Source: Anaeramoeba ignava BMAN
Lineage: Eukaryota; Protista; Anaeramoebae
Assembly: GCA_028826165.1 (NCBI GenBank)
Contig: JAPDFW010000023.1
Span: 1 to 64,000, forward strand
Reading direction: 5' to 3'
DNA: 64,000 nt
The position numbers and the translations under genes are program-made. Positions 1 through 46,144 of the stretch are shown here, in pieces. Numbering within the stretch: position 1 is the stretch's first letter; every line of letters begins with the position of its first letter. The notes beneath the pieces were generated by a model. The model did no database searches and was not told where the DNA came from. It worked only from the letters and a program-made list of their open reading frames with translations.

Positions 1-1677
1 AATTTTAAATATTGAAATGATTAATAAATTAAAATATAAAATAAAAATAAAAGGATTTTATTACTTATTATTATTTATTATTAAATAATAATTTTGGAAA
101 AATAATTTATCAAAAACAAAATTATATTTTCTTTTTTTTCTTTTTTTTCTTTTATTTTAGATTTGAAAATTTAATTAAAATTAAGAATAAAAATTGAAAA
201 CAAAAGAAAATTTGTTTTTTGTTTTTGTTTTTGTAATTTATTTTTATTATTATTAGGTATTTTAATTAAATTTTATTATTATTTAAATTTAAATAAAAAA
301 GTAAATAAGAAATTATTTATTTATCAATTTTTATTTTTATCTCTGTAAATATAAATAAATAAATTATTTACATTTCATTTATTATTTTTATTATTTTTAT
401 TTTTCTTTTAAAAACAAAAAATTGATAATCAAAAAAAAATTAAATAAGATTTTCTTCTTATAAATAATAATAATAATATTTATAAAGAAAAAGAAATAAT
501 TTGATTTTTTTATTTTTTTTGAAAATTTTTGTTTTACTTAAAATATAAATATAGGAGAATTTATGATAATATTTAAAATAAATATTTTTTTTTCACATTT
601 CTTAAATTTATTAATATTAATAATAATATTATATTTTTTCTCTTAATTTCTTCTTTTTTTTTTAAAAAATAAATCTCTTTTCAAATTTGAAAATAAAATA
701 TTTTTTTTTTCTTATTTTTTTTTGAAAAAGAAAAAGAAAAAGAAAAAGATTAAATTAAATTAGATTAAATTTGGGAAAAAGAAATGAAATTATATTATTT
801 ATTAATTTCTTTTTTTTATTTATTTTTATTATTATGATTATTTATTAAAATAAATTATTTGAAAATATCTTTATTTGTAATTAATAAATTGATGAAATAT
901 TTTCTTTTAAAAAATTAATTTGATTATTGTAAATTAAAAATACAAAAGAAAAGAAAAAAAAAAAGAAAAAGAATAATTTAATATTCTTATTCTTTTTTTT
1001 TCCACAAATTTATTTAAATTTAATAAAAATCTAATTTCAATTTTGTTTTTAAAATTTTTTGTTTTATAAAATAATTTAATTTATTTATATAAAATTTATT
1101 ATTTTCCTTCTTTTCTAAAATAAAAGAAATGAAAAGAAATGAAAGAAAACTTATTTAGATTTAATTTTTAATTCAATTCTTCTTTTATTTATTTTTTAAA
1201 AATTTAATTATATTTTTTTTGGGAAATAATAAATAAATAAAAATAAAAATAAAACAATTTATTTATCCTAATTTAATTTGAAAAAAAAATTTCCTTTTTA
1301 ATTTTAATATTTTTTTATTTGATTTGATTTGAAAATTTCATTTTTATTTTAATTATTTATAAAAATAAAATTATTCAAAATATTTTATATATTTATATTT
1401 ATATATTCAGAGAAATGTTATTAAATTATAAAACTTCAAAAAAAAAATAATTTATAATAATTTATTGATTTGATAAAGTAAAAAAAAAATAAATAATTTT
1501 ATTTTAATTAAAATAAAATGGAATAATATTCATTTTGTTTTTCTTTCAGAATGAAATGATTTAATGATATTTATATATATTTGATTAAATAATAATAATA
1601 ATTTTATTCTCAAAAATTGGAGAAAAGAAAATAAAAATAACAAAAATTTTAATTTTAATTTTATTATTATTATTTAC

Positions 1678-3190
1678 AAACTATTTTAATTAATAAAAAA
1701 AAGTAAAGAAAGAAATTATTTAATATTAATAAATTTTTTTGATATTTTTGTTTATTTGTTTTTAAATTAAAATTATAAAGTTAATTCAATTTATTTTCAT
1801 TTATCTAACATAAAAAATAAATAAATATAAATATAAAATAAATATAATTATAAATATTAAATATAATTTCAAAAAAATAATTAATTTGATAAATATTTAT
1901 TTCTTTTTCTTTTTTTTTTTGGATTATGAATAAATTTAAATTTAAATTAATAATAAATTATTATTGAAATAAAAAATAAAGAAATAAAAAAGAAATAAAA
2001 GAGTTTTGAATAATTTCTATTTATTTATTTATTTACTCCTATTTTTTTTAAAATCAAAATTTGTTTAATTATTAATAATTATTTTTTGTTTTGTTTTTTT
2101 GTTTTTTAGAATTTAAAGATATTAATTAGAATTAAAAAAAAAGAATTAAAAAAGAAATTTGAATAAAAAATCCATTTTTTTTCTTGTAAGAGATTTATTT
2201 TATATTATAAATAAATGAAAAGAAAGAAAAATTCATTTTTTATTTTGAAATTTAAATTTGAAAAAAAAGAAAATAAATTTGATATTTTTTTTTTTTTCTT
2301 TTTCTTTTTCTTATTGGAATTTAAATTAAAACAAAATTTAATAAAGAAAAATTGAATAAAATTTATTTTTTTCTTTATTATTATTATTATTTTGAATAAA
2401 AATTTCAAATAAATACATATTCATTCATCTTATTCTTTTGTTCTTTTTTTTCTTTTTAAATTTATTAATTATTAATATTATTTACAAATAAAGAAAATAA
2501 TATTTATTCCTTAATTCATTTTAATTCATTTTAATTTTTAAAATTAAAAATAAAAAAATTATGATAAAAATGAAAATAATCAAAAAAATGAAATAATAAT
2601 AAATTATCTTCTTTTTTTTTAAAAAATTTTTACAAAAGAAAAGACAAGATAATAATTTCAAATTCAAAAAATAAAATTGTTTTCTTTTCTTTTCCAATTT
2701 AATTTAATTTAATTTTAATTTTAATTTTAAGAATTATTTTGTAAAACTTGTGTTTTTTTTTTGAAAAGAAAAAAATAAAAAAAATTTAAATATAAAAGAG
2801 AAAAGAAAATATTTAAAAAAAAATATAATTCAAATCTTTCTTTTTACATATTTAAATTTTATAAAATAATATCTAATAAATTTATTATTTAATTTTTATT
2901 ATTAATATTTTACAGCCTATTTTATTTAATTTTATTTATTATTCAAAAAAAAAAGTTTTAGAAAAAAATTCAAAAATTTTTGTTTTTAATTTTCATAAAT
3001 TTTGTTTTCCAAATTAAAAATAAAATGGAAAATTAAATTATTAAATAAAATTTACCACCTATTATTATTATTATTATTATTAGATTTATTTTTAAAAATA
3101 AAATTTTATTAAAATAAAAAACAATTTAAATTTAAAAAAAATATAATTTTGATTATTATTTATTTAATTTTTTTTGGAAATAATTACTCT
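1678..3190 (-). other. Further candidate microexons: 3188-3190 AGA, 3056-3058 GTG, 2914-2916 GCT, 2037-2038 GA (2 nt), 1678-1680 TTT
   Basis: Same ATAG-(N2-3)-GTAA pattern and strand; the first three are spaced about 130-140 nt apart. No protein motif confirms them. Confidence 0.45.
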
Positions 3191-3879
3191 CTATTATTTT
3201 TTATTTAAATAAATAAATAAATTATTATTATTATTATTATTTTGAATAAAGAAAATTAAATTTAAATTTGATTTATTTAATAAAATTGGAAAGAAAAAGA
3301 AAAAAGGAAAATAATTTAAATTTTCATTTCAAAAATAAATAAATCAAATTATTTTATTTTTCTTTATTTAAATTTGATTTAATATTAAAATAATAATAAT
3401 AATAATATTTTTATTTTTTCTAAGTAAATTTATTAAATAATTTATTCATTTTATTAATCTTGGAAGAAAAAAAAGAATAAAAATTTTGTTTTTTGTTTTT
3501 GTTGTTTTTGAAAATAAAAATAATCCAAAATTAAATGTAAAATATAGATAATAAAAATATAAATTTTTGTTTTTTTTTTAAATTTTTTTTATGTGTGATT
3601 TTTGAAAAAAAGAAAAAATTAAATAAAACTAATTTTCATTTAATTTCCATTTTCATTTTTCATTATCAAAAACAATAACAAATAAATTTTATTTTTGAAT
3701 TGAATTTAATTTAAATTTAAATTTTTTTTGTTTGGAAAAAAAAGAAAAGAATAAAATTTTAATTTCTGAATTTAATGTTAATCTTTTGTTAAATAAAAAT
3801 GAAGTGAATTAAATTTTGATTTGAATAGAAATAAAAATTTTTTTGTTTATTTTATAAATATTTTTATTTGGAAGAAAGT

Positions 3880-5720
3880 ATATATATATTGTTATTATTA
3901 TGTTAAATGAGTATCAATTTATTGAAAAAAAAAAGAAAGAAAATTTTTTTCATTCCTTTGAATAAAATATATATGTGGAAACTCAAATTTTCTATATTAA
4001 ATTTATTTTCAAACAAAAAAAACAAAAATGAAATCAAAAAAAAAAGAAATCAATAAAATTTTCATCTTTCCAAAAAAAAAATTGAATTATTAAGAAGAAA
4101 TAGAAATTATAATAATTTTTATTTCAAAAATATTTTGAGATCTTAGTTCAAAATATATAATGAAAAATATTAATCAAATTATTATAATTTGGATAAAATA
4201 TTTTATTGGATAAAAGAGATTAGTTTTTCTTGATAATCCTCAATTATTAAATTTGTTTTCTTTTAGAAAAAATTTCAATATCTAAATTGAAAAAATTTAT
4301 ATAAAAAAATTCTAATTTATTAACTAATGTAAAACTTAATATAGATCATTTAATTTTTATTTAATTATTTTTTTTTAGATTTTTTTTTAGATCAGGATAA
4401 TAAGAGATTTATTGATTTTTTTTAAGAAAGAGATTATTTTATTAAATTAAATAATATTTTATAATAATCAAAAAAAAAATCAATTTTTTCATCTTTTGTT
4501 TTTTTTCTTGTTATTTAGATAATTAATAATTTACAAAAAAAAATTAAAGAAATGATATCTTCTTTTCTGAATAAAATTAATGAATTTATTCCAGATATTT
4601 CCCTTTATAATATTCATAATTTGGATATTTATTTGATTAAAAATTATTTCATTTTAAGAAGTTTATTATTTTTTTTTCAATTCTTATAGGTAAATTTTTT
4701 AGTTTAATTAATATTCATTTTTTAACTGAAAATCAATTTGAGAAAATAACTGTAGATATTGGAAAAGAAATTTTAACAACTTTTGAATATAATTTAAATT
4801 ACAATAGAAAAGATAAGGAATTATTTGAAAAGTTGTATTTTTTTTTCAATAATTTAATAATAATTTATTTAGAAATTGATTTGATGAATATTCAATTACA
4901 AATCATTTGTGATTTATCAAGAAAAGGTTTCAATATAAGAGAATTAATAATAATTTTTGAATATATAAAAACTGGAAAAAACAAAATTTTTTTTTGATTC
5001 AATTCATATTTTGAGGAAAGAATATTTTAAAGGAATAAATAAGAATATAAAGAATAAATCAATAATTTTACATCTAAATGGAAAGACAAAATATCAATTT
5101 CTTTAATTGTTAATGATAAGGATAGAAACTCAATTCAATCATTATTAGATATTTAATCCAAATGTAAATTTAAACTGGATATAAATCATTATATTGAGAA
5201 TATCAAAAAGAGGTTTATAAATAAAAATGGTTAAATTTTTTTATGTTTACAGAAAATTATATCATCTCTTTATTCTTGAGTCTTTATACTGTTTAAATAA
5301 ATATTATTATAACTCTCTTAAATTTAAAAACAATTTTTTTTAACATCATTTATTATCATTATACATATTTAGAGTATGAGAAGTGTTTTTTCTATACAAA
5401 ATATTTTTAATCTCAATAAAAATGGATTATAAAATAACTAAAGAAATAATAACTGAAAATAGAATTTGATTTGATTCTTGAAGATTTTTCCATTTTTTTT
5501 TGTGTAATAATTTATCAATAAACTCTTGTAAAGAAAAAAATATTTATTTTTTCATTATAAAACAATATTTTTGTCAAATATAATTAATTCACTAAAACAA
5601 TTCAAATTTCAATTTATAATAATTATTTTCAAAAAGGGAAAAAAAACCAAATGAAAAATTGAAGTTTTATAAAAAATGAATTTTATTGTATTACAAGAGA
5701 GAAACCAAAAAAAATGTATA
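3880..5720. pseudogene. Possible heavily decayed coding/TE remnant of unknown family
   Basis: Sequence complexity and G+C are slightly higher than in the flanks, with short codon-like stretches broken by stops and homopolymers. No recognisable motif. Confidence 0.25.
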
Positions 5721-6586
5721 AAAATTTGAAAAACAAAAACAAAAACAAAAACAAAATTTTACAAGAATAAATTTTTTTTTGAATTAATTTTTTTTTGTTT
5801 AATTTTGAAGTTTTCAATAAAAAAAATAAATTAAATTAAATTAAATTAAATTAAATTAAATTAATAATTTTTTTTTGATTAAATTGGAAAATATTATTTC
5901 AATTCCTTTTTGTTTTTTTTTTCTAAAATTATAAAATTAATAAATTAATAAATTTCTTTTCTTGATTTAATATCCAAAATTTTAAATAAAATAAAAATAA
6001 AAATAAAATAAAAAAGAAAGAAGAATTTGAATTGAGAATAAAACAAAATTGAATTAAATTTGTAAATCTGAATAAAATAAAAACAAAATAAAAAAAGAGA
6101 GAGGAATTATAATTAATTAATTAAATATTAATTTTAAATTTTTTCTTTTTCTTTTTTTTTCTTTTCAAATTTTTAAAGTTGAAAATTTTTAAAAAAAAAT
6201 GAATTAAAATGAAAATATTTCTTTTTTTGGAAAATAATTGAATATTAAATTGAATTTGAAATTGAATTTATTTTTTTTTGGATTAAAATAAATTGAAATA
6301 TAATAATCAAATAATAAATATAAATATTATTTTGATTTTTTTTTGGAATAAAAATTATAATTAAAATTATAATTAAAATTTATTTCTTTTTTTTTGATTA
6401 TATTCTTATTAATTTTAAAAAAAATTCAAAATTGTTTTGTTTTAATTAATAAAATAATTGAAATAAAAATATTGTTTTTGTTTATGTTTATGTTTATTTA
6501 AAAATGGAAATGAAATATCTTCTTATAAAATTATTATTAATATTTTGAAAAAGAAAAATAAATTAATTAATTAATTAAAAACTTAC

Positions 6587-6682
6587 TCCACTTAAATTAA
6601 AATTAGCTCCATTATCAACTAATAATTTAATCATATCAAATGTAATTGATTCATTCCTACATAAATAATGAACTGGAGACCA
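6587..6682 (-). CDS. Ankyrin-repeat exon
   Basis: AAG|TGG TCT CCA GTT CAT...AGT GGA|GTAAGT; 32 codons WSPVHYLC...[14 protein letters not shown]. Confidence 0.88.
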
Positions 6683-9600
6683 CTTTTTTTTTGTTTTGAA
6701 ATAATAAATTAAATTAAATTAAATTAAATTAAAAAATAAATTTCTCTTTAATTTATATTTTAAATAATTTTCTCTTATATTTTTTTTGTTATTTAAAATT
6801 AAAAAATTTATAATTTTTTTTGAAATAATATTTTTTTTGTGTTTTTTTGAAAATCAAAATTAAAATAATAAATAAAATTACTCTCTAATTTATTATTTAT
6901 TTTTAATTTAAAAAAGAAAAGATTAGATTTAAATTGTTTTTTGTTTTTTGTTTTTTGTTTTTGAAAAAAAATAAAATAATTAAATTGAGGAAATTTTGTA
7001 TATTTATTAAGATTTTCCATTAATTTCCAAATATATTTAATTTAATTTAATTTAATTTAATTTAATTTAATTTAATTTAATTTAATTTAATTTAATAAAT
7101 ATATTAAAATCTTATTAAATTATTAAAGGTTAATTGAAGAGAAATAATAATAATATAGATTTATATTTTAAGGTTATGAAAGATAGAGAGATTATAAAGG
7201 AATAAATAATAAGATGAAAAGAGGAATATATTTATATTTATATTTATATTTATATTTATATTTATATTTATATTTATATATATTTATATTTATATTTATA
7301 TTTATATTTATATTTATATTTATATTTATATTTATATTTATATTTATATTTATATTTATATTTATATTTATATTTATATTTATATTTATATTTATATTTA
7401 TATTTATATTTATATTTATATTTATATTTATATTTATATTTATATTTATATTTATATTTATATTTATATATTTTTATATTTATTTTATATTTATATTATT
7501 TTATTTTTATATTTATATTTATATTTATATTTATTTATATTTATATTTATATTTATATTTATATTTATATTTATATTATATTTTATATTTATATTTATAT
7601 TTATATTTATATTTATATTTATATTTATATTTATATTTATATTTATATTTATATTTATTTAGTTAAAATATCTAAGATAAGAGATAATTACAAAAACAAG
7701 ATAAATTCAATTTGAAAAAAAAATCAAAATAATAAAAATAATTTATCAAAAAATTAAATTTAATTAATTAATAAGAAAGAAAGAAATTGAAAATATTCAA
7801 TCTAATCAATAAAAAAAATATGAGAAATAATAATATTTTAAATAAGATTAAAGAAATAATACAAAAAAAAAAGTAATTCTTTAAATTAAATTAAATTAAA
7901 TTAAATTAAATTAAATTAAAATTATTCAAATAAAAATAAAAAAGATTTTGAATAATTTATAAATAAAAGTGTTAATTATTCTTATTTAAAAATTTATAAT
8001 AAAAATAATAAATAAATAATTTATAACAAGAAATATCAAAATTTTTTTCTTATTTTTATAAAATTAGGAAATAGATATAAATTTAAAGAAAAAAAATCAA
8101 ATTAAATATAGAAATTCAAAAATATTAAATTAAAAATTAATTAAAACAAGATATTACAAATTTTAAATTTATATAAATTAATTATCAGAAAATCATTTCT
8201 TAATATATTTGAAATTATTAATAATATTATCAATTTTCATCTATTAGGAATTATTCAAAATAAAAATAAAAATAATATATTAACTCTTTTTTTTTGAAAT
8301 TTTAAAAATGAAAGGAATAAAATATCAAATAAAAAAAATATTCAAAATTTATTTAAAAATATTAAAAAAGAAAGAAAATTGAAATAATAAAATGAATTAA
8401 ATTCACAAAAAATAAATCAATTCTAAATTTAAAATATAATTTATTTATTAATATTAATGAATTAAATAGAATAAATAAAACTCAAAAAAAAATTAGAAAT
8501 AAATTTAAAAATATATTTCTAAAATAAAGAATAACAATTTCCATAATACAAGAAATATATTTGAGAAAAAAGAATATATTTTGAAAATTATTATTAATTT
8601 AAGAAATAAATCAAAGAGGAATAAAAATATTTATCAAATAATATATATATAAGTAAATATACTCAATAAATTAAAAATTATAATAAAAATATTAATATAA
8701 ATTAAAATAGAAGAATTAAATGTTATTAGAGAATATATGAAATATATAAATCAATATCAAATTATGAATAAAATAAATCAAATAATTGAAAAAAAAATTA
8801 GGAAAGGAAATAAAAATATATAATAAGATGAGGATATTTTAATCAAATAAACAAATAAAATTGAAAAAAAAACATTTGTGATTTAATACTCAAATCATAT
8901 TTAATATTCAAAATAATGTAATAAGAAATATAAATCATTTTTTTTTGGAAATCAAAAATTAAATTAAAATAAAAATTATCTCAAAAACAAAAATAAATAT
9001 TAATCAAGAAGAAAGAAAAAAGAAAAAAGAAAAAAAGAAATATTATCAATCAATAAAATAATAATTTCAAGATATAATAATGAGAAGAATTGAGAAATCA
9101 AAAAAAAAATTTAAATCAGAAATCAATTCTCAATATTTCAATAATTAGAAATATAAAAGATAATAAATTTAAGAAAAGAAAATTTATATAAATATAAATA
9201 TAAATAGATAAAAAATTAAGATTGGAATTAATTTAACATAATTTAATTCAAAAAAAAAAAGTAAATAATATTGATAAAAAAATATTTTGAGGAATAAAAA
9301 ATAGATAATAAAAAATAGATAAATAAATTAATGAATTGAAATGAAAAGAATAAAGAAAAAGAAAAAGAAAAAGATATTATATTTAATAATAAATAAAAAA
9401 TAATTTAAATAACTTATTGATGAAATTAAAATACAAGTTAAAGAATCAATATTTAAATAAAATAAAATAAAATAAAATAGAAAATAAAATAATAATCATA
9501 CAATTTGATATTAAATAAATTAAATAAATAATTCCTTATAATAAATTAATAAAAAATAATTTAAAATTCAAGAAATAGTTCAATTTATGAATATAATAAG

Positions 9601-10293
9601 ATAAAAAATTTATCAAAAATTATTATATTATATTATATTATATTGAAAAAAAGAAAATTCAAAAATATTATTATTATCAATTTATTAAATAAATAAACAG
9701 AATAATGAAAGAATAAATAAAGAATATGAATCCAAAAGTAATAAATTAAATGTTTTCAAGAAGAATTATGTTTATCTATAAACAATTTATTAATAAGAAT
9801 ATTTATTATTTTTTTTTGAAAAGAATATTTGAATAAATTAAATTATTATGAGAATATATCTTGTATAAATAAATTGGATTTAGAAAAAATAATGAATATA
9901 AGAATAGAAATTTTAAAATTACAAAATAAATTAATATAAATAAAATAACCTTATATAATAAATATAAATATTCAAAAATATTTTGATATAATTAATTAGA
10001 AAATTAATTAGAAAAATTATTATCAAATTTCATCAATATTATTATTATTATTATTTAAAACTTCTTAAATAAATATTATAAGGTAAATAAATATGGAATA
10101 AATCAGAAAGAGAAATATTATTTATCCCTTTTTTTAATATTTGGAATGATTAATCATTTTATTATTGAAGAGATAAAATTTATTATTGATTATATGATTA
10201 TATTGATATAAAAAATTTTCATATATAGAAATTGTATTTAAAAGTTCAAATAATATTAATAACAATTCTTGAAAAAAATTATGAATAAAATCA

Positions 10294-10324
<31 letters not shown>

Positions 10325-13300
10325 GGAAATATTAAATATCTTGAAATTATTCTTAATTCAAATAAATATATTGAAAATAATATTCAAAAAAAAAAATTCA
10401 GAAAAAAAACAATTTTTTAATTAATTAATTAAGGTTTATAATCAATTTAAATAATATTTCAAATCATTTATAAAATAATTATTTATAAAATAACAATTCT
10501 TACATAATTATATTATGTAACAAAAACCCTAATAATATTATTATTATTAATAAAAAGAAATAATATCAAAGAATAAATTTAATTGTTAATAAACATATTA
10601 AATCAAGTTTTATTTAAAAAAAATTAATTTATATTCATATATTTTGACTTTTTGGAATGAAATAAACATTTCTAATTTCATAATTCAAATAAATATAAGA
10701 AGATAGAAAATAATAGAAAAAAATTAAAATAAAATTAGAAAATCTTAATTCAAGAAATTATATTCAATCTTTATAAATAAGATAGAAATAAGGAATACAA
10801 AATATTTCAAAATAATTCAAAGAATATTTATTTTTTAGAAAGATAAAAAGAAATTAGAATGAATCAAGGATAGAAAAAAAAATAATTTATTTAGAAATAA
10901 TTAAATTATAAACCAAAAAAAAAATCAAAGAATAAAAAAATATCTAAAATATCAATAAAAAAAATATTATTCTTCTAAAATTAATAATTTTCATAAATGG
11001 AATCAATAAATATACTTATTAAATGAAAAAAAAATAATAATATGAAATATATCTATGTTATTTAAAGAAAAGAAAAGAAATATTAAATTATTTTCTTTAT
11101 TTGTAAATATTAAATTTATCAAGAAATAAGAAATAAATGAATAAAAATCAATTCATTCAATTAAATAAATAAACAAAAACTAATAAAAGAAATTAACAGA
11201 AGGTAAATATATGAAAAAATAAACAATAGAATATATTCAGAAGATATTTGAAATTATATCATAATTTATAGTTAATGGGAAATAGAATATAATATAAGAA
11301 AGATGAATAGAAAATGAGAAATAATGAAGAAAATCAAATTCAAAATCAAATTCAATAATGATAATAAAATTAATAAGATAAATAACAAGGATAATTCTGA
11401 AAATAAAAACAAATTCAAAAATAAAAACAAATTCAAAAATAAAAACAAATTCAAAAAAGAAAGAAAAATTCAAAGAAAATAAATTATAACAAAGAAAATA
11501 AATCTAAGAAAGGATATAAAGAATATTTGGAAATATAAATTAACAAAGATATCAGAATTAGAGTTAGAATCAAAATAATGAAAAGAATAATCAGAATATT
11601 ATACAGATTATTTGATAGATTATTCTTAATTGAAAGATTAAATAGAATATGATTATAAAAATTAATTTAAAAATGAATTATTCCATTTTCCTTTATTTTC
11701 TTTTTATCAAAATTACTTCAAAAAAAACATAAAAAAAACATGTAGAAATCTCACTTATGATTTTCTTAATAAAATTAAAAATCAAAATCTTATTTGATAT
11801 TTCCCCAATTTCAAATTAAATTAAATTAAATTAAATTTAAAATTAAATTTAGATTATTTTTTTCAAATGAACTAAATAAATATTATTTTATTTGGGAAAT
11901 TTGTTTTTGTTTTTATTCAAAAGAAAAATCACAAAAAAAAATGTTTATTTTTACATACTATTTTTTTTCAAAATAAAATAAAAACAAATTTTCATTCAAT
12001 AAATAATTCATTTTTTTCAAAAAGGAAAAAAAGAAAAAAAAGTAAATTTTGATTTTGATTTATTTTTACTTCCTATTATAAATAATTTAATATTATTCAA
12101 TTTAAAATAAAAATTGATTATTTTTGATATTTATTTATTATTTAAATAAAATAATTTTAAATTTAATTTTAATTGTTTTTGTTTTTGTTTTTTGAATAAT
12201 AAAAATGTAATTTAAATTGGAAAAAATTTTATATTATTTTACATCTTGTTTATTCCAATCAGCTCCTGATTTAATAAAATGATTAAAAAGATCCTTATTA
12301 ATTGGTTTCTTTTGTGCAAAATAATGTAATAAAGTTGCTCCATTCTTTTTTATTTTTGTTTTTAAATTTAATATTGGAAAAACAAAATAATTCAAAAAAG
12401 AAATGAATTAAAATAAATTATTCATAATTTAAATAATAAAAATGAGTTAATAAATTAAAGAACTAATTGTTGTTAATTTTAATCAAAAAAATAATTCAAA
12501 CCTCCTCTTTCTAAATTTATTTTTTAAATTAAATAAATTAAATTAAAATTAAATTAAAAATATTAAAAATGTTTTTGTTTTGTTTTTGTTTTTGTTTTGA
12601 ATTACATAATCTGATTTGTTAAATTCATCTTCCAAAAGCTTTAATTCCTTTTCAATTTCAACAGTATTGATCTTTAAATTTGTAAAATTTTTTTGTTAAA
12701 ATTAAATAATAAATCAAAATAGATTAATTTTTTTTTCCAAAACAATAATAAATATTAATTTAATATATTTTAATATTAATTTCTTTTTTTTTTTAAATTT
12801 AATTATTTACTGGCTATTTATTAAATTGAATAATAAATAATTAATTAAAAAAGGATTGTGAAGAAAAAAATAGGCAAAAAAAAAGATATTTACTTCCTAT
12901 TTATTTTATGAATAATTATTTTTGAGTTAATAAATTTTTAAATATTTTATGAATAAATTAAAATAATTAGGTTTAAAAAAAAGAAAAAATATTTAATTTT
13001 TAAATTCCACAAATGAACAAAATGGCAAGGAAAATATATTTACTTTCTATTTATTAAATAATAAATAATTATAAATAAATAAAAAGAATTGAGCATAAAA
13101 AAAAGGAGAGAATATTTATTTTGAAATTTCTCAAATTAAAAAAATTGGGAAAATGAGAAAAAATGGGAAATGAAAAATATATTTACTTTCTATTTTATAA
13201 ATAATTTTCATTTTTGTTTTGAGAATTGTTTTTTGTTTTTAAATATATTAATTTACAGGCTATTTTGTTTTTATTAAATATTTTCAATTCAAATTATTTA

Positions 13301-13738
13301 AAATAAATTTATTAATTTAAAAAAATAATTACTGGCTATTTTTATTTGAATGAAAATTAATTAATTAGTTTTGGAAATAAATATATTAATAATTAATAAA
13401 TTAGAGATTAATTAAATTCAAATTATATTTTTTATTTAAATTTGAAAAATATATATATTAATTTGAAATAAAATTACTTCTTTTTCGTTCATTAATTCTT
13501 GTTCTTTGTTGATTAATTCTTGTTTTTCTTTCATTAATTTTTGTTCTTTGTTAATTAATTCTTGTTTTCCTTTCATTAATTCTTGTTCTTTGTTAATTAA
13601 TTCTTGCTTTCCTTTCATTAATTCTTGTTCTTTGTTAATTAATTCTTGCTTTTCTTTCATTAATTCTTGTTCTTTGTTAATTAATTCTTGTTTTTCTTTC
13701 ATTAATTCTTGTTCTTTTTTTGTAGTAAAATTTTCCAT
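6587..13738 (-). CDS. Multi-exon gene for a coiled-coil + ankyrin-repeat protein (partial model; probably extends in both directions)
   Basis: Phase-0 exons bounded by AG/GT on the minus strand: 13478-13738 (heptad repeat), six 3-nt exons (P,P,K,K,E,P), 12606-12671 ([22 protein letters not shown]), 12243-12344 ([34 protein letters not shown]), three 3-nt exons (E,Y,R), 6587-6682 ([32 protein letters not shown]). The spliced product is open and shows ankyrin motifs (D-x-x-G-x-T-x-L-H ... L-x-x-G-A-D/N-x-N). Confidence 0.8.
6882..6884 (-). CDS. Single-codon microexon AGA (R)
   Basis: TTAG-AGA-GTAAT; occupies the ankyrin 'G' position to give D-E-Y-R-W-S-P-V-H. Confidence 0.55.
6960..11790 (+). 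mobile_element. Degenerate full-length relative of the LINE at 14970-20510 (no ORF left)
   Basis: Colinear matches: 6998 gtatatttattaagattttccattaatttc vs 14999 gtatgtttatgcagactctccattaatttc; 8181 attatcagaaaatcatttcttaatatatttgaaatt identical to 15711; ~8830 matches the GDFN region; ~10120 matches the PLIFG region; ~11740 tgtagaaatctcactt...ttaataaaa vs 20461 tgcaggaatctcactt...ttaataaaa. Confidence 0.9.
7226..7660. repeat. (TATATT)n microsatellite expanded inside the LINE relic
   Basis: About 70 hexamer units; LINE homology resumes on both sides. Confidence 0.95.
11955..12072 (-). CDS. Two single-codon microexons: 12070-12072 GAA (E), 11955-11957 TAT (Y)
   Basis: ATAG-GAA-GTAAA and ATAG-TAT-GTAAA; they fill the ankyrin D-x-x linker. 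Confidence 0.65.
12243..12344 (-). CDS. Ankyrin-repeat exon
   Basis: AAG|AAT GGA GCA ACT...CAA GAT|GTAAAA; 34 codons NGATLLHY...[10 protein letters not shown]. Confidence 0.88.
12606..12671 (-). CDS. 66-nt exon leading into first ankyrin repeat
   Basis: AAG|ATC...TAT|GTAAT; 22 codons, no stop; ends SDY and joins NGATLLHY. Confidence 0.75.
12811..13335 (-). CDS. Cluster of six single-codon microexons: 13333-13335 CCA, 13257-13259 CCT, 13187-13189 AAA, 13044-13046 AAA, 12894-12896 GAA, 12811-12813 CCA
   Basis: Each reads ATAG-NNN-GTAA on the minus strand. They are separated by 67-147-nt introns and lie between two conventional exons of the same gene. Confidence 0.65.
13478..13738 (-). CDS. 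Exon encoding heptad coiled-coil repeats ([14 protein letters not shown])n; 21/42-bp coding minisatellite
   Basis: Part of ORF 13436..13738. GTAATT donor after ...EKE at 13477; AATAG immediately precedes the ATG, so this may be an internal exon. Confidence 0.7.
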
Positions 13739-14690: not shown

Positions 14691-14978
14691 TTTAAAAAAT
14701 AAATAAAAAATAAATATTTTTTATTTTGTGTTAACTTTTAAGATGAAAAATGAAAAATGAAAAATTTGTTTTTATTTTTTTAATTAAAAAAAAAGAAAAA
14801 AGAAAAAAGAAAAAAGAAAATTTCTTATTTATTAAGTTTTGAATAAATTTCAAAACAAATTGTTTATTTAATTTCTTTTTCAAAAATGAAATAAAATTGA
14901 TAAAATTGTTCTTAATCATAATTTTGAATTTTTTTAACTAAATTTATTTATTTTATTTTTTTCTTTTCTTTGAAAAAA

Positions 14979-17900
14979 ATGGTCAAATGGGGAAACCTGT
15001 ATGTTTATGCAGACTCTCCATTAATTTCAAAACATGTCTTCTTTGACATATTAAAACCATATAAAATAGTGAGAGGATACTTGAGAAGGAATAAGGATAG
15101 TACCGATGGACACTTTAAAGTAATTCACGATAAGAAAGCAAGAAAAGAACAAAGAAGAACATGGAGAGAAGGTTATTCAATTACAGTATCTAAAGCAAGA
15201 GAGAGTTACACTTCAAAAGAAAATCAACTTGAGAAATTAAAAGAAAAAATAACGGATCGAAATCAACGGTCACATAAAGAAAATATAGAAAAAATAATTT
15301 ATCAAACATTGAATTCAAATAACTTTATTAAGAATCCATTAATAATTAAGAAGAAAGAAATTGAAAACATTCAATCTAATCAAGAGAAACATGAAAATAT
15401 TTTAAATGAGATCAAAGAAACAATACAAAAAGCAATTCCTCAAATGAAATCAAAGAGAATAATTCAAAAAGATTTACAAGAATTTATAAATAAAAGCGTT
15501 AATTATTCTTATTTAAAAACTTATAAACAACATAATCCATATAGTTATCAGAGAACTCACAATTTACAACAAGAAATTTCAGATTCTCTGATTCAACACA
15601 ATTGGGAAATTGATACAAATTTAAGAAAAACAATTAATTATCGAAATTCAAAATATTATATGGAAACAAATTTTAACAAGATACTACAAATTTTAGATTC
15701 ATATAAATTAATTATCAGAAAATCATTTCTTAATATATTTGAAATTCTTAACATCATTAACAATTTTCACCCACTGAGAATCATTCAAAAAGGGAATCAT
15801 CAAGCTGAGATATGGGATCGAAAAAATAACATATTAAATCTTTTTCGAGATTGTAAAAATGAAAGAAATAGAATACCAAGAAATTTCAAAATTCAATTAA
15901 AAACAACAGAAGGAAACAAAATTGAAACAATAAAAGGAACTAAATTAACAAAAATAAATCAATTCTCATTCAGAATAGCATCTATAAATATCAATGGATT
16001 AAATAAAATAGGAAAGATCCAAAAATTAGAAAAAATATTCCTCCAACAAAGAATAACAATTGCTATTATACAAGAAACTCACTTGAGAAAAAGATTATAT
16101 TTTGAAAACTATCATTCATTTGAGAAACAAGGATATGGAACAATAGCACAAGGAGGAATAGCAATAATCATCAAAAAATGTATATCAAAATATGCTCAAG
16201 AAATAAAACATCCAGATAAGGATATTATACAAATTAAAATAGGAGAATTAAATATTATTGGAGTCTATATGAGACATGGAACACAATCTCAAATGATGAG
16301 TCAATTAAACGATATTATTGAAAAATTAGGAGAGGAAAGATATATAATAGCAGGAGATTTTAACCAAACAGACAAAGAAATGGAAAAACATTTCAGATTT
16401 AATACTCAAATAATACATAATACTGAGAATAGTGCAATAAGAAATATTGATCATTTCTGCGTCAAAAATCAAAATAGAGAAATTTTATCACAAACAGTAA
16501 ATATTAATCAAGAAGAAAATCTCTCAGATCATAAAATGATAGTTACAATTGAGAAAATCAATATATTGAGTGAAGAGAGAAAAGAATATTACCAACCGAC
16601 AAAACAACAATTCCAAGATATGATAATAGAAAAATTAATAAAACAAAATTTATCTGAGAAATCAATGCTCAACATTTCAATAATTAAAAATGTAAAAGAA
16701 AAATTCAAAAAAAGAAGTATCATCCATATAAATACAAAAAATAAGATAGGAATTAACTTAACAGAATTTAACTCAAAAAATAAATATAATTGGAAACAAG
16801 CTCTGAGGAAAAGGTGGAGAGAAACCATGAGAGGGATAGAAATAGATAACCAAAGCAAAACAAACTATTGGACAGAAGTAAAAAGGATAACAAAAGCTAG
16901 AAAAGATATTATATTTAATAATAATGAAAAAGAAAAAGAATTTAAACAACTTATAGATAAAATTAAAATTCCAGTTCAAGAATCAATACTTCAAGAAATA
17001 GAAAATAAAATAATAAATATAGAACCTGATATAAGATCAATCAAACAAATATTTCCCCATGATAAATTAATAAAAACAATTCAAAACTCAAGAAATAGTT
17101 CTACTTGTGATTATGATAAAATCGAAATGTATCAAAATCCTTATATTGAAAGAGAACATCCAAAATATTATGAATTTATCAAATCAGTAAACAGAATGAT
17201 GAGAGAATGGATAAGAGATCCCAACCAAGAAGTAATAAAATATATGCTTTCAAGAAGAATGGTGTTCATCTTTAAACAAGGGGATCCTAACCAAATCTCT
17301 AATTATCGCCCAATATCTATAAATAATGCTTTAGTAAGAATATTTTTGAAAAGAATACTTGAAGAAATTGAACCAATATGGGAATACATCTCGTATCAAC
17401 AAATGGGTTTTAGAAAAATGATGGATACAAGAATAGCAGTCTTAGAGTTACAAAAGAAATTGAAAGAAATAAAAGAACCATATATAATAAGTATAGACAT
17501 TCAAAAATGTTTTGATACTATTGATCATGGATTAATTAGAAAAGTTATTAATAAATTCATCAGCAATAATAATATTAAAAAACTATTAAATGAATATTAT
17601 AAGGGAAATGGATGTGGCATCTATCAAGGAGATCCATTATCACCTTTAATATTTGGAATGGTCAGTCACTTTATAATTGAGGAAATAAAAATAAGGGTTG
17701 ATCATATACAAATGTATGCTGATGATATGATACTATTAGTAAAAAATTCTTATAATAAAGTCATAACTAAAGTTCAATCAATATTACAAATTCTTGAAAA
17801 TTATGGATTAAGACCTAATAAAAATAAAACTATAATAACAAAACAAAAAAGAAATGTTAAATATCTTGGGATTATACTTGATGCAAAGAAACATATAGAA

Positions 17901-18950
17901 AATAATATAGAAAAATGTGAAAAAACTTTTCAAAAATTGAGATTTATAATACAATCCAACCAAATTTCTAATCACTTGAAAATTATAATTTATAAAATGA
18001 CGATTCTTCCACAACTATATTATGGCACAGAGGCATTAATACTCAGAAAGAAACAATATCAAAAAATGGATTTAATGGTGAACAAACATATGAAATTAAT
18101 TTTAAAAATAAACTTTCATTCACCTACGCTTACCTTTCGAAATGAAACGAATACCCCCAGTTCCAGAACACAAATAAATGTGCGTAGGTGGAAAATAAGA
18201 GAAAAATTAGATAAAATTGAAAAATCAGAACTTAAAGAATTATGTCCAATCTTCACAAATGAAAGAGAGAGAAATGATAAAATATGGGAGAATCAAAACT
18301 TGAAAATCATCCAAAAATATTTATGTTTAGCAAGGCACCAAGAAATGAGTATCAATTCAGGATGGAAAACAATAGCCTATTCAGAAATTACTAAATTAGA
18401 ACCTAAAAAACCAAAAATAAAAACATATTTAAAATATCAAAAAAGTACTATATTAATGAAATTAAGAATATTCACAAATGGACTTAAATCATATAGCCAC
18501 CACATGAGAAATAGTGATGTGAAATGTCCATGTTGTGGAGAAGAAGAAGAAACATTGGATCATTTTTTTTGGAAATGTCCAATGTATCAAGAGATAAGAA
18601 ATAAATGGTTGAAATCAATACATCCAATAAAACAAACAATTAAATTAATGAAAGAAATTAGCAGAAAGGGAATATATGACAAAACTATAGAATATATTCA
18701 AAAAGCTTTTGAGATTAGATCAGAAATGATAATGGATGAGAATATAATTGAGATAGATGAAGAGAATATTGGAAATGAAGAAAGAAATCAAAATGAAAAT
18801 CAACAACAAAGTGACATGAATAATGAAAATAATGAGAATAATAGAGGTTGGGATGGAATCCCTCTTGGTTCGCGGATATCTATATTTGGTCGCGGATGTT
18901 CTTTTGTATCCACGAACAAAAAATTATCCTCGAAATTTTTTTTTCCGTAG
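14979..18950 (+). CDS. LINE polyprotein: RRM-like N-terminus, AP endonuclease, reverse transcriptase, CCHC zinc knuckle (last ~35 aa are read-through into the inserted transposon)
   Basis: APE motifs SININGL, IQETH, GGIAII, IIAGDFN, IDH, SDH; RT motifs NYRPISI, QMGFR, DIQKCFD, QGDPLSP, YADD, KYLGI; CPCC-x8-H-x4-C. First ATG at 14979. Confidence 0.95.
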   Translation: MVKWGNLYVYADSPLISKHVFFDILKPYKIVRGYLRRNKDSTDGHFKVIHDKKARKEQRRTWREGYSITVSKARESYTSKENQLEKLKEKITDRNQRSHKENIEKIIYQTLNSNNFIKNPLIIKKKEIENIQSNQEKHENILNEIKETIQKAIPQMKSKRIIQKDLQEFINKSVNYSYLKTYKQHNPYSYQRTHNLQQEISDSLIQHNWEIDTNLRKTINYRNSKYYMETNFNKILQILDSYKLIIRKSFLNIFEILNIINNFHPLRIIQKGNHQAEIWDRKNNILNLFRDCKNERNRIPRNFKIQLKTTEGNKIETIKGTKLTKINQFSFRIASININGLNKIGKIQKLEKIFLQQRITIAIIQETHLRKRLYFENYHSFEKQGYGTIAQGGIAIIIKKCISKYAQEIKHPDKDIIQIKIGELNIIGVYMRHGTQSQMMSQLNDIIEKLGEERYIIAGDFNQTDKEMEKHFRFNTQIIHNTENSAIRNIDHFCVKNQNREILSQTVNINQEENLSDHKMIVTIEKINILSEERKEYYQPTKQQFQDMIIEKLIKQNLSEKSMLNISIIKNVKEKFKKRSIIHINTKNKIGINLTEFNSKNKYNWKQALRKRWRETMRGIEIDNQSKTNYWTEVKRITKARKDIIFNNNEKEKEFKQLIDKIKIPVQESILQEIENKIINIEPDIRSIKQIFPHDKLIKTIQNSRNSSTCDYDKIEMYQNPYIEREHPKYYEFIKSVNRMMREWIRDPNQEVIKYMLSRRMVFIFKQGDPNQISNYRPISINNALVRIFLKRILEEIEPIWEYISYQQMGFRKMMDTRIAVLELQKKLKEIKEPYIISIDIQKCFDTIDHGLIRKVINKFISNNNIKKLLNEYYKGNGCGIYQGDPLSPLIFGMVSHFIIEEIKIRVDHIQMYADDMILLVKNSYNKVITKVQSILQILENYGLRPNKNKTIITKQKRNVKYLGIILDAKKHIENNIEKCEKTFQKLRFIIQSNQISNHLKIIIYKMTILPQLYYGTEALILRKKQYQKMDLMVNKHMKLILKINFHSPTLTFRNETNTPSSRTQINVRRWKIREKLDKIEKSELKELCPIFTNERERNDKIWENQNLKIIQKYLCLARHQEMSINSGWKTIAYSEITKLEPKKPKIKTYLKYQKSTILMKLRIFTNGLKSYSHHMRNSDVKCPCCGEEEETLDHFFWKCPMYQEIRNKWLKSIHPIKQTIKLMKEISRKGIYDKTIEYIQKAFEIRSEMIMDENIIEIDEENIGNEERNQNENQQQSDMNNENNENNRGWDGIPLGSRISIFGRGCSFVSTNKKLSSKFFFP

Positions 18951-25700: not shown

Positions 25701-25743
25701 TAAATATAAATATATAAATATAAATATAAATATAAATATAAAT

Positions 25744-25916
25744 ATAAGAAAGGATCATATCGCGTACTTTGTCGTTTTTCGAGTAAATGCCCCAATGTCT
25801 TTCAACTTCACCTCCCCCAATGCACCGGCCTTCGGCCTCTCCGCTACGCTACGGCGGGGAGGCTCAGTTGACGACTTGGGGCTTTACACGAAGACGACAA
25901 ATGTCGCGTTTCTTAT
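25744..25916. other. GC-rich long imperfect hairpin with two terminal ears (candidate structured RNA or ssDNA element)
   Basis: Nested pairings CGCG/CGCG, TTTGTCGT/ACGACAAA, GTAAA/TTTAC, GCCCCAA/TTGGGGC, TCAACT/AGTTGA, CCTCCCC/GGGGAGG; the apex holds GGCC-TTC-GGCC and GC-TAC-GC. Confidence 0.75.
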
Positions 25917-26034
25917 TTATTTCTTTTCATTATTGTTCTTATATTGTTCAATTTTGATTAGAATTATTAATTATTAAATTGATTTTAAATTGATTTAATT
26001 TGGATTGATTAATAATTAATAATTAGAAATAAAT

Positions 26035-26140
26035 AAGGGCGTAGACTCGGGTGAGTATGTTAACACCAGCTTTTTCTTTGGGCGGGTGGCTAATTTCAAA
26101 GCTTAAAACATTGCCAAAGATGAACATCCCCTTTTTTTTA
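26035..26140. other. Second GC-rich island with possible pseudoknot, followed by a T-run
   Basis: AGCTTT(26068)/AAAGCT(26098) interleaved with TCTTTGG(26075)/CCAAAGA(26114); hairpin ACTC-GGGT-GAGT at 26045-26056. Confidence 0.45.
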
Positions 26141-26829
26141 TTTTTATTTTTATTTTTATTTTTATTTTTATTTTTATTTTCAAATTTTCAATAGATTTAT
26201 TTATATATTATATATATAAAAAAAAAGAAAAATGAAAGAAGAAGAAAAAAATGAATTCCACTTTTTAAAAAAAAAAATCCACAAAAACATTTTTTTTCCA
26301 TTTTTTCTTTCAATTTTTTTTATTTAAATTTAGAATAATTTTAATTAAGGAATTGTATCTAAATTTCAATTACTTTGAAAGTTTATATTTATATTTATTT
26401 TCATTTTCATTTTTTTTGTTTATATTATTTATTTACTTCAATCTTTTATTATTTATTTATTTATTTATTTATTAATTAATTAAAATCTAAAATAATTTTT
26501 AATTTATAAATAAATAAATAATAAATTAATTAATTAATTACATTCAAAGTTTACATGATTTTTATTTTTATTTTGATTTTGATTTTGATTTTGATTTCAA
26601 AAATGTTAAATAAATAAATAAATAAATAAAAAATCATTTCTTTTTATTTTATTTATTGAAAATATAAATATAAATATAAATATAAATATAAATATAAATA
26701 TAAATATAAATATAAATATAAATGTTATTTTTTATTTAAATATAAAATTCTTAAAATGAAAATAAATCAATTCATTTTTTTTTGTAAAAATTTATTTATT
26801 CAATAAAAAAATAAATAAAATAAATCATT

Positions 26830-31915: not shown

Positions 31916-34900
31916 ATTATATAAATATTAAAAATGAAAATGAATTGAAATGAAATGAAATTAAATTATATTTAAAATAAATTAAATTGTAAATGAAATT
32001 AAAATGAAATTTTGAATAAAATAATAAATGAAAATAAATAAATAATTATTCTAAAAATATAAAAAGAATTACAAAATAAAAATCAAATCCAAAAAGAATA
32101 TTTAATAAAAATATATTTTTATTAATATATTTATTATTCTGATATTATATTTATTATATTATTTATTAATATAATATTGATAATAAATTTGATTCCATTA
32201 TTATATTAATTTTGAATATATATTTTGATTTAATATTTATTATTTAAAAATGTTTAAAATATATAAATTGGAATAAAATTTGATTTTTTTATTTTTTTTG
32301 ATTTATATTTATATAAATTGAAATAAAGTTGATAAAAATATTATTTATTTTGATTTATACTTTTAAAAATTTATTTTTATTTTTAAACATTTTATATTAT
32401 ATATATTTTGAATTTATATTTATTATTATATATTTATTAATTATATATTCATTCATTATATTTATATAATATAATTAATATTCATTTTTATTTATTATTT
32501 TTCATTTCAAATTTATTTATTTTAATAATTAATAATAATAAATTTTGATTTATAATTAATTAATTAATTAATTTTAATATTTTTATTTTATTAATAATTC
32601 AATTATTATTTTCAAAATTTATTTTTATTTATTTTATTAATTTTATTTTTGATTTTTCAAAATTCATTTACACAAAATAAAATGAAAATAAAATAAATTA
32701 CAATTAAAAATATTTTATTTATTTAATTTATAAAATATAAAATATGAATTAAATTGAATTAAAATTAAATTAAATTGAAAATTAAAATGAAAATAGAAAT
32801 TAAATTGTAAAATGAAAATGAAATTGAAAATGAAAATTAAATTAAAATTGAAAATGAAATTGCAAATAAATAAATAAATAAATAAATAGAAGAAGAAGAA
32901 AAAGAAGATAAAATATATATTATATTTTAAAAATTGATTATTAATAATTAAATTAATAAAAAAAAACAAAAATTAAAATTAAATTAAATTAAATTAAATT
33001 AAAATAAATATTTATTTATAAATATTTTAATTTACAAAATACTAAAAATATATATATCAAATATAAAAATAAATTTCAAAATTAAAAACATAAATTAAAA
33101 ATAAAAATAAAAAATAAATTAAATTATGAATAAATTATGAATAAATTATTATTAATCCCCTTATGCTCCTTCAACCCAAACCAATTTTAATTTACTTTTT
33201 ATTTCCTTTATAAATTAACTATAAATGAAATTGAATATAAATTTGAATTAAAATAAATGTAAATCAAATGGAATTATGTTGTAAATTAATTCAAAACATA
33301 CTTCAATTTTGTTTTACAATTAAAGTGAAATAATTATTTTATATTAAATCAAATAAAAAATATAATAAAATAACTCAATTCAATATTGGTTTATTTTTTG
33401 TTCTATTTTAATTCAAAATAATTGAAAATCAAAATAAATCAATGAAAATCAAATAAAATTGAAATAAAATTGAAAAATAACTTTTTAAACATAAATTCGT
33501 TTTAATAAATAAATAAAATGAAAATAAAATAAAATGTAATTTAATTTAATGAAATTAAATTGATTTTATTAATTTAATTTAATTATAAATTGAATTAATT
33601 GTTTATTTATTTAATTGTAAATTGAATTATTTTATATTTAATTGTAATTGAATTTATTTATAAATTAAATTGAATTATTTATTTAATTTAATTGTAAATT
33701 GAATTAATTATTTATTTAATTTAATTGTAAATTGAATTAATTATTTATTTAATTTAATTGTAAATTGAATTGAATTTATTTAATTTAATTGTAAATTGAA
33801 TTATTTATTTAATTTAATTGTAAATTGAATTAATTTATTTAATTTAATTGTAAATTGAATTAATTTATTTAATTTAATTGTAAATTGAATTATATTTATT
33901 TAATTTAATTGTAAATTGAATTATATTTATTTAATTTAATTGTAAATTGAATTTATTTAATTTATTTAATTTAATTTATTTAATAAATTGAATTAATTAT
34001 TTTATTTAATTTAATTTAAATTAAATTTAATTAATTTTAATTTAATTGTAAAATTGAATTAAATTTATTTAATTGTAAATTGAATTATATTTATTTATTT
34101 AATTTAATTGTAAATTGAATTATATTTATTTAATTTAATTGTAAATTATATTTATTAATTTAATTGTAAATTGAATTTAATTTATTTAATTTAATTGTAA
34201 ATTGAATTGAATTTATTTAATTTAATTGTAAATTGAATTTATTTATTTAATTGTAAATTGAATTAATTTATTTAATTTAATTGTAAATTGAATTTATTTA
34301 TTTAATTTAATTGTAAATTGAATTATTTATTTATTTAATTGTAAATTAATTGAATTTTTATTTAATTTAATTGTAAATTGAATTTTATTTATTTAATTTA
34401 ATTGTAAATTGAATTTATTTTATTTAATTGTAAATTGAATTATATTTATTTAATTTAATTGTAAATTGAATTATATTTATTTAATTTAATTGTAAAATTG
34501 AATTTATTTATTTAATTTAATTGTAAAATTGAATTTATTTATTTAATTTAATTGTAAATTGAATTATATTTATTTAATTTAATTGTAATTTTAAATTAAT
34601 TTAATTTAATTTAATTGTAAATTGAATTAAATTCAAAATAAAAATAAAAAGAAAAATTTAATTAAAAATGAAAAATTGAAATGAATATTGATTGAATTTT
34701 TTTAATTTATTTGTAAAATTGAATTAATTTATTTAATTTAATTGTAAATTGAATTTATTTATTTAATTCAAATTGAATTTAAAATTCAAATTGAATTTTC
34801 AAAAATTGAATTGTAAATTGAAATTAAAATTTAATTTAAATCCAAATTAAATTAAATTGTAAATTGAAATTATTTAATTAAATTCAAATTCAAAATTCAA

Positions 34901-46117: not shown

Positions 46118-46144
46118 CCCCTTATGCCCCTTCAACCCAACCCC
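46118..46144 (-). other. Putative G-quadruplex / i-motif box CCCCTTATGCCCCTTCAACCCAACCCC (same at ~48997, ~58880; variants at ~33157, ~36538)
   Basis: Four tracts of 3-4 G on the minus strand with 2-5-nt loops. Confidence 0.65.

Follow-up and report, generated by a model that had tools for sequence, protein, structure and literature searches.

Putative single-codon exons at an ankyrin-repeat junction with a LINE-bearing intron in Anaeramoeba ignava

Gene organisation at the ankyrin junction

The window examined in this study is a stretch of 64,000 nucleotides (nt) from the protist Anaeramoeba ignava BMAN (contig C25:1-64000 of the 42.8-Mb assembly). A small ankyrin-repeat gene was found on its minus strand, with every exon boundary in phase 0. 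Its exons 3 and 4 are separated by an interval that holds the remains of a long interspersed nuclear element (LINE) together with three triplets flanked by AG and GT, each of which is a candidate for an exon consisting of a single codon. The window has a GC content of 6-16% outside the LINE and LINE neighbourhood, in a genome for which an A+T content of 80.65% overall and 91.86% in introns has been reported (PMC11550330). The features of this junction, in the order of the gene, are as follows.

12243..12344, minus strand: exon 3, encoding a single ankyrin repeat (NGATLLHY...GADWNKQD); its GT donor occupies 12242-12241
6683..12242, minus strand: interval between exons 3 and 4, 5,560 nt, containing the three motifs and the LINE
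12070..12072, minus strand: candidate single-codon exon GAA (E), TAATAG-GAA-GTAAAAAT, with a 168-nt intron upstream
11955..11957, minus strand: candidate single-codon exon TAT (Y), AAATAG-TAT-GTAAAAAT, with a 112-nt intron upstream
7763..11349, plus strand: decayed LINE, antisense to the gene, between the TAT and AGA triplets
7214..7666: (AAATAT)n microsatellite in the intron that holds the LINE
6882..6884, minus strand: candidate single-codon exon AGA (R), AATTAG-AGA-GTAATTTT, with a 199-nt intron downstream
6587..6682, minus strand: exon 4, one ankyrin repeat (WSPVHY...NFNLSG), with AG before it and a GTAAGT donor after it

Splice motifs between exons 3 and 4

A first-pass annotation of the window, made from the sequence alone, had described exon 3 as ending in WNKQD and exon 4 as beginning with WSPVHY, with exactly three AG-NNN-GT motifs in the non-LINE parts of the sequence between them. 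Both exon ends were confirmed (12344..12243 and 6682..6587 on the minus strand), and a pattern search of the minus strand across the whole interval, LINE part included, returned the same three motifs. None was located on the gene strand inside the 3.6-kb LINE part. All three triplets possess a splice consensus on either side (TAG-GAA-GTAAAA, TAG-TAT-GTAAAA and TAG-AGA-GTAATT). GAA and TAT are situated 168 nt and 283 nt past the donor of exon 3 and AGA 199 nt before the acceptor of exon 4, which are ordinary intron distances, and the four introns implied by this arrangement measure 168, 112, 5,070 and 199 nt.

The count of three, by itself, was found to be near chance, as block shuffles of the interval gave a mean of 2.0-2.25 bare AG-NNN-GT motifs and a P(>=3) of 0.33-0.40. 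The extended form TAG-NNN-GTAA, however, is present in three of three motifs where approximately 0.15 would be expected (P ~0.001, block shuffles), and it is this form rather than the number of motifs that exceeds chance. It could be proposed that the triplets arose by chance in so long and AT-rich an interval and were fitted to the number needed, given that about 2.1 bare motifs are expected and that the needed number was known before counting. Such an explanation is opposed by the extended consensus and by the lack of any motif within the LINE part, and the comparison of gene copies described below bears on it further.

Ankyrin-repeat spacing at the junction

The canonical ankyrin repeat (Pfam PF00023) is a unit of 33 residues with the consensus ...GADVNAKDKDGxTPLH.... 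Membership of the ankyrin-repeat families (PF00023, PF13606) was established by profile match. Exon 4 scored 23.0 bits on Ank_3 (cut-off 22.3), with exon 3 (16.9) and exon 4 (19.2) both falling below the cut-off of 21.1 on Ank, as expected for single repeats. On the 33 positions of Pfam Ank, exon 3 corresponds to profile positions 1-32, and the W of exon 4 corresponds to position 3. Direct joining had been claimed to be three residues short, and this was borne out exon by exon, with positions 33, 1 and 2 left unfilled. If residues are counted between G in GAD and T in TPLH, the junction would have a spacing of 9 with direct joining and of 12, the canonical value, with the three codons. The preceding repeat had been read as D-Y-N-G-A-T-L-L-H; this agrees with the join of exons 2 and 3 in the NCBI model, but probably overlooks a 9-nt microexon between these exons (AAAGAGGAG, described with the remaining features below).

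The local family differs from the canonical repeat in that the turn between helices is two residues longer (a 32-residue exon plus three codons, giving 35), while many junctions elsewhere in the genome carry loops of 6-15 codons.

A search of exon 4 against 1.84 billion proteins matched NCBI models of A. ignava and homologues of A. flamelloides. For A. ignava models with directly joined ankyrin exons, the G-to-T spacing was 9 in 22 of 27 junctions, as opposed to 12 in the A. flamelloides homologues (7/7) and in metagenome homologues (8/8), and 12 or 13 in 10 of 11 cases in an unsplit ankyrin gene of A. ignava itself. From this difference between 9 and 12, the public A. ignava models are three residues short exactly where three single-codon motifs sit in the genome. 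Furthermore, the A. flamelloides loops QYD and QYN resemble the x-Y-x of the present junction.

Near-identical copies and diverged paralogues

Near-identical copies of exon 3 were identified at ten places in the genome and of exon 4 at eight. The GAA motif is kept in all ten copies, with GAA, AAA or GGA as its codon, and TAT is invariant in 10/10. The third motif was found at the same place in eight copies (AGA in five, GAT in two and AAA in one). A change from AGA to GAT requires three base changes within 3 nt, and the flanking intron is almost unchanged among copies. Coding positions were more variable than introns among the copies, and the introns of this locus resemble only those of duplicate copies.

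Aligning paralogues had been proposed in the first-pass annotation as a check on the motifs. Four diverged paralogues without a LINE were identified (C2:9268-9722, C61:361770-362327 and two genes on C93), in which the flanking exons are 72-91% identical, the introns are unalignable and 264-802 nt lie between both exons. Each possesses three AG-NNN-GT motifs at the same junction with related codons, which would encode E-K-Q, K-Y-N, N-Y-K and D-F-N, with a doubtful fourth motif 29 nt later in the N-Y-K paralogue. The middle residue of the loop is aromatic in four of five genes, this locus and the four diverged paralogues being counted. That homologous motifs recur at this junction in every near-identical copy, and also in the four diverged paralogues, speaks further against chance matches; given the paralogue comparison, that explanation appears close to refuted and we regard it as extremely improbable.

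Survey of ankyrin junctions in the genome

A small profile was built from the local ankyrin exons and approximately 232 kb of loci were parsed with it. A junction was called standard if 8 residues follow the G of GAD before the exon ends and 1 residue precedes TPLH at the start of the following exon. All 41 standard ankyrin junctions contain motifs; three is the commonest number (19 junctions), with the rest carrying 2-15. The peptides of the three-motif junctions were KDG (seven times), KYK, KDK, KYD, QYG, NYK, EDE, KDE, KKR, TFQ and EYR. Position 1 was K in 14 of these 19 junctions, position 2 was D in 11 and Y in 6, and position 3 was G in 8. The surveyed tripeptides match the K-D-G of the ankyrin consensus, which is also the commonest among them. 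In another ankyrin gene (C1:1324-1326 kb), exons of 31 residues are combined with two motifs at each of three junctions, giving the canonical 33.

The triplets show the composition of codons. No stop codon (TAA, TAG or TGA) was found among 295 triplets of phase-0 ankyrin introns, against a background of 8.6% (P ~3e-12), and their GC content is 25%, as opposed to approximately 12% in the surrounding intron. The residues encoded by the 295 triplets are mainly K, D, Y, E, N, R and G. The motifs are also specific to strand (298 sense and 17 antisense in the survey) and to one exact length, as 3 nt was the only AG-to-GTAA spacer enriched when lengths of 0-15 nt were compared. Counts for the 3-nt spacer were 63 versus at most 6 in one 9.9-kb locus and 26 versus at most 2 in another, with 2-5 expected. 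Across the genome, ATAGNNNGTAAA was found 1,346 times versus 1,025 in a reversed control, a modest excess with strong clustering; the signal resides in clustering, strand and spacer length rather than in the total. Ten isolated ATAGNNNGTAAA matches on contig C1 were mostly due to chance, lying in ordinary exons or satellite, with one ankyrin gene being informative. The triplets have both the splice-site consensus and the frame and codon behaviour of the 3-nt microexon class.

Larger arrays of the motif were also observed. On the minus strand of C1:409-413 kb, more than 30 motifs are spaced approximately 75 nt apart by nearly identical introns of about 72 nt, the triplet being mainly what differs. 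This array (C1:408500-414500) sits between a coiled-coil exon and the next exon, with an (ATT)n run of about 1 kb inside it, and some of its units lack a donor (GC or AT in place of GT). In addition, two tandem BTB-TLDc genes on the minus strand of C1:1057000-1066999 each have an array of the form ATAG-(ATN/CTT/TTG)-GTAAAT, which would insert a Tyr/Asp/His/Asn-rich stretch into the TLDc domain if included.

The spacing of the C25 junction had originally been offered as protein-level support for one-codon exons. This argument is reinforced by the motifs of the paralogues, the K-D-G tripeptides of the survey, the 0/295 stops and the three additional residues in unsplit homologues. The observation behind it stands and its interpretation is partly supported; the premise of a preceding D-Y-N-G is doubtful. 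On these sequence comparisons, a layout of single-codon exons is likely to be real in the family, and the three motifs on C25 are probably a local case of a gene layout recurring in the A. ignava genome.

The LINE-bearing intron

The identity of the element in the interval was assessed against an apparently intact copy in the window.

14970..18950, plus strand: apparently intact LINE with one open reading frame (ORF) of 1,326 residues encoding an Exo_endo_phos endonuclease, RVT_1 and zf-RVT

With blastn, 7763..11349 was found to be 69% identical over approximately 3.6 kb to this endonuclease/reverse-transcriptase element, which assigns it to the LINEs, non-LTR retrotransposons with an APE-type endonuclease, by homology and agrees with its earlier description as a LINE-filled intron. 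The tblastn pieces of 7763..11349 are colinear with broken frames, with weaker protein matches reaching back to about 6996, and no ORF of at least 60 residues was found on the plus strand within 7763..11349, so that the element has no intact ORF. A ciliate-type genetic code was considered and rejected, as Q is encoded by CAA in both the LINE ORF and the exons, and neither contains TAA in frame.

The distance between exons 3 and 4 is 5.35-6.2 kb at no fewer than five loci. As this gap is shared among them, the LINE predates the duplications. LINE-bearing copies include those on C25, C42, C57 and C108. In the supplement of the genome paper, 32,108 introns are listed for A. ignava, the most frequent length being 76 nt and the greatest 4,168 bp (PMC11550330).

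Alternative interpretations and public gene models

Several findings weigh against the single-codon exon layout or its use at this locus. The layout requires an intron of 5,070 nt here, and no annotated intron of the genome exceeds 4,168 bp. In KAJ5079628.1 (145 residues), the NCBI model of this locus, exons 1 to 3 follow one another directly and the protein terminates in KQD-VK-stop, with no use of the microexons or of exon 4; direct joining of ankyrin exons is also seen in NCBI models of paralogues. A transcript-derived protein was not found in the protein databases, a query with the C93 model matching only itself and a query with exon 1 matching only KAJ5079628.1. The third loop residue is R here and G in the consensus. 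Junctions with 2-15 motifs make exact canonical spacing a tendency and not a rule. Exon 3 is variable at 12 codons among its ten copies, 11 of them non-synonymous, a pattern that fits diversifying selection or neutral decay of dead copies under AT-biased mutation. Finally, a BTB-TLDc gene holds the large array of C1:1057-1067 kb in an intron of phase 1; as direct joining already gives a good TLDc domain there, the inclusion of every such motif cannot be assumed.

Some of these findings would be explained if the layout is real in the family and the C25 copy is dead or truncated. The LINE would then have broken splicing between the second and third codon exons, the transcript would end after exon 3 at a stop two codons into the former intron, and AGA and exon 4 would be relics copied in recent block duplications. 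The ending of KAJ5079628.1 in WNKQD-VK-stop without exon 4 agrees with this, as do the length of the 5,070-nt intron beyond that of any annotated one (4,168 bp), an insert common to at least five copies (exon 3 to exon 4 distance of 5.35-6.2 kb), the degraded exon 4 of the copy on C137 and the 11 of 12 variable exon 3 codons that are non-synonymous. On the other hand, seven of eight copies retain an intact exon 4 and third motif, and exon 3 is free of stops and frameshifts in all ten copies. The annotation is also weak evidence, because running on to the first stop, in the manner of Augustus, is the default where an aligner cannot place reads with 3-nt exons. We consider a dead or truncated C25 copy to be rather unlikely; as to the copy itself, the chance of its still making a full message through exon 4 appears to be slightly better than even.

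A further explanation is that exon 3 is spliced straight to exon 4 in the mRNA, the motifs being skipped or used only in minor isoforms, and that the A. ignava loop is truly three residues shorter. Paralogue NCBI models do read VDWNQQN-WSPVHY and WNKQD-CSPVHY across the junction, the phase-0 boundaries allow the frame to survive skipping, and a good domain results from direct joining in the BTB-TLDc array. However, skipped motifs would not be expected to keep G/C-rich codons, to lack stops in 295 of 295 triplets or to carry K-D-G at the place of the consensus, and the unsplit ankyrin genes of A. ignava and A. flamelloides have the longer spacing. The same public models, moreover, read through introns (GVKQ... 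in KAJ5072428.1 and KAJ5075244.1). For these reasons we regard direct joining as very improbable. In KAJ5072428.1 and KAJ5075244.1 (loci on C71 and C67), intron is translated as low-complexity GVKQ... runs, and these fall at junctions with K-D-G or K-D-K single-codon motifs. Several of the public models translate intron in this manner, and they are unreliable at these junctions.

Proposed splicing and origin of the single-codon exons

In the layout of single-codon exons that we favour, the helical core of each ankyrin repeat would be encoded by one exon of approximately 96 nt, and every residue of the hairpin loop between cores by its own 3-nt exon in the context (A/T)AG-NNN-GTAA, separated by short introns of about 70-200 nt. 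The family junction x-Y-x, here E-Y-R, would fill Pfam Ank positions 33, 1 and 2. In the C25 copy and its recent duplicates, an antisense LINE has entered the intron between the second and third putative single-codon exons and since decayed, stretching this intron to 5,070 nt. Splice sites would presumably be recognised across introns and not across exons, and the introns would be removed one by one, each step first fusing the codon to a neighbouring exon, since only three bases separate the two splice sites of such an exon, leaving no room for both to be bound at once. From the sequence we infer that the single-codon exons are retained in mRNA and translated, and that the LINE-bearing copy may be spliced through to exon 4.

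As an origin of the layout, tandem duplication of units composed of a codon and its intron is consistent with the array on C1 and with stretches in which adjacent triplets are identical, and is at odds with the dissimilar introns that separate ankyrin loop codons.

A splicing-based generator of diversity may also be envisaged, in which each loop codon is included or skipped independently, giving combinatorial loop lengths and sequences. The codons would lie at the target-contacting ankyrin positions that are randomised in designed ankyrin binders, with new units arising by tandem duplication of a codon with its ~75-nt intron. This proposal fits the third codon being the most variable spot (AGA/GAT/AAA) among otherwise near-identical copies and the array on C1, where triplets differ and introns are near-identical. 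We consider it quite doubtful.

Comparison with known systems

Single 3-nt exons are known in animals, namely micro-Ex8 of Drosophila homothorax (PMC7392893) and a three-base exon of MAP4K5 (PMC8632122). As in those cases, an in-frame conserved codon between AG and GT is found here that is hard for aligners and gene predictors to recover. The animal microexons, however, occur singly in ordinary genes, whereas those of A. ignava would occur in runs of 2-15 between ankyrin exons and in numbers above 30 in linker arrays, at a fixed structural position of a repeated domain and recurrently across the sampled loci.

The micro-exon genes (MEGs) of Schistosoma were reportedly described by DeMarco and colleagues in Genome Research in 2010. 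Their symmetric exons measure approximately 6-36 nt and make up most of the coding sequence, and their products are secreted. The layout proposed here resembles them in its strings of tiny multiple-of-three exons within one gene, MEGs also being associated with protein variation. It differs in that only the 3-nt spacer is enriched and in that the microexons alternate with exons of about 96 nt and encode loops only; exons of 66-261 nt account for most of the coding sequence here, and the gene is not a MEG of the Schistosoma type.

Ratchet points of Drosophila are zero-length exons, in which AG directly adjoins GT within a long intron and nothing stays in the mRNA. Adjoining acceptors and donors likewise split a long stretch into short units that would be removed sequentially, but here the three bases between AG and GT would stay, which sets these motifs apart from ratchet points. 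Recursive zero-length splice sites were also considered as a candidate explanation and rejected, as a spacer of 0 (AG directly before GTAA) was not enriched and three bases lie between AG and GT.

Introner-like elements are families of near-identical introns dispersed in unrelated genes. The array at C1:409-413 kb, in which an intron of about 72 nt recurs more than 30 times almost unchanged, is similar in this respect, but its copies are in tandem, and the introns between ankyrin loop codons are unlike each other.

A search of the available literature library found no paper linking Anaeramoeba with microexons, and neither the genome paper nor its supplements (PMC11550330) mention them. The layout is absent from the public annotation of A. 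ignava. If the layout is true, as many as 15 one-codon exons in succession would be spliced between ankyrin exons of this organism, with over 30 a possibility in linker arrays. With AG and GT three bases apart, exon definition would be impossible and simultaneous recognition improbable, and the system would offer a test bed for ordered, intron-defined splicing as well as showing how introns multiply at codon boundaries. Public A. ignava proteins would then be systematically wrong at ankyrin genes, being about three or more residues short per junction or containing translated intron, and the NCBI model of the present locus would be without one whole ankyrin repeat (exon 4).

Remaining features of the gene and window

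The other exons and candidate exons of the gene are listed below.

13478..13738, minus strand: exon 1, ATG at 13738, coiled-coil repeats, with NEKE at its end followed by donor GT
12811..13335, minus strand: six ATAG-NNN-GTAA motifs between the coiled-coil exon 1 and exon 2, with codons CCA (13335-13333), CCT (13259-13257), AAA (13189-13187), AAA (13046-13044), GAA (12896-12894) and CCA (12813-12811)
12606..12671, minus strand: exon 2, ending in NKSDY, included in the NCBI model
12502..12510, minus strand: candidate microexon of 9 nt, AAAGAGGAG (K-E-E), flanked by TTTAG as acceptor and GTTTGA as donor
6498..6521, minus strand: candidate short last exon, with a 65-nt intron upstream, encoding KIFHFHF before a stop codon, predicted from sequence

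Exon 1 is identical to the N-terminus of KAJ5079628.1. The series of six motifs that follows it would read P-P-K-K-E-P; it is kept in seven of nine other near-identical copies and is not used by KAJ5079628.1. The intron units at about 12.8-13.3 kb were not detected by a tandem-repeat finder. The 9-nt candidate AAAGAGGAG was found in most of the ten near-identical copies and is omitted from KAJ5079628.1, with a 12-nt homologue (KNNE) being included in the NCBI model KAJ5069518.1 of a C93 paralogue.

Parsing with the local ankyrin profile found no further ankyrin exon downstream of exon 4 on the minus strand. Further AG-NNN-GT motifs (TTT, GCT, GTG, AGA and AGA) occur on the minus strand at 1676-3192 and 5312-5318, downstream of exon 4 in seemingly empty AT-rich DNA. 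That at 5312 is kept in duplicate copies and has a poor donor (GTTATA).

Outside the LINE, the GC-richest part of the window is 25722-26157 (33% GC). Five similar islands of approximately 110 nt (33118-33225, 36498-36610, 46078-46196, 48957-49068 and 58840-58952) have a GC content above that of their surroundings and a plus-strand translation of IIINPLMPLQPNPILI, with AGTATGT located about 180 nt from three of them. These islands have the appearance of a dispersed or long-period repeat.

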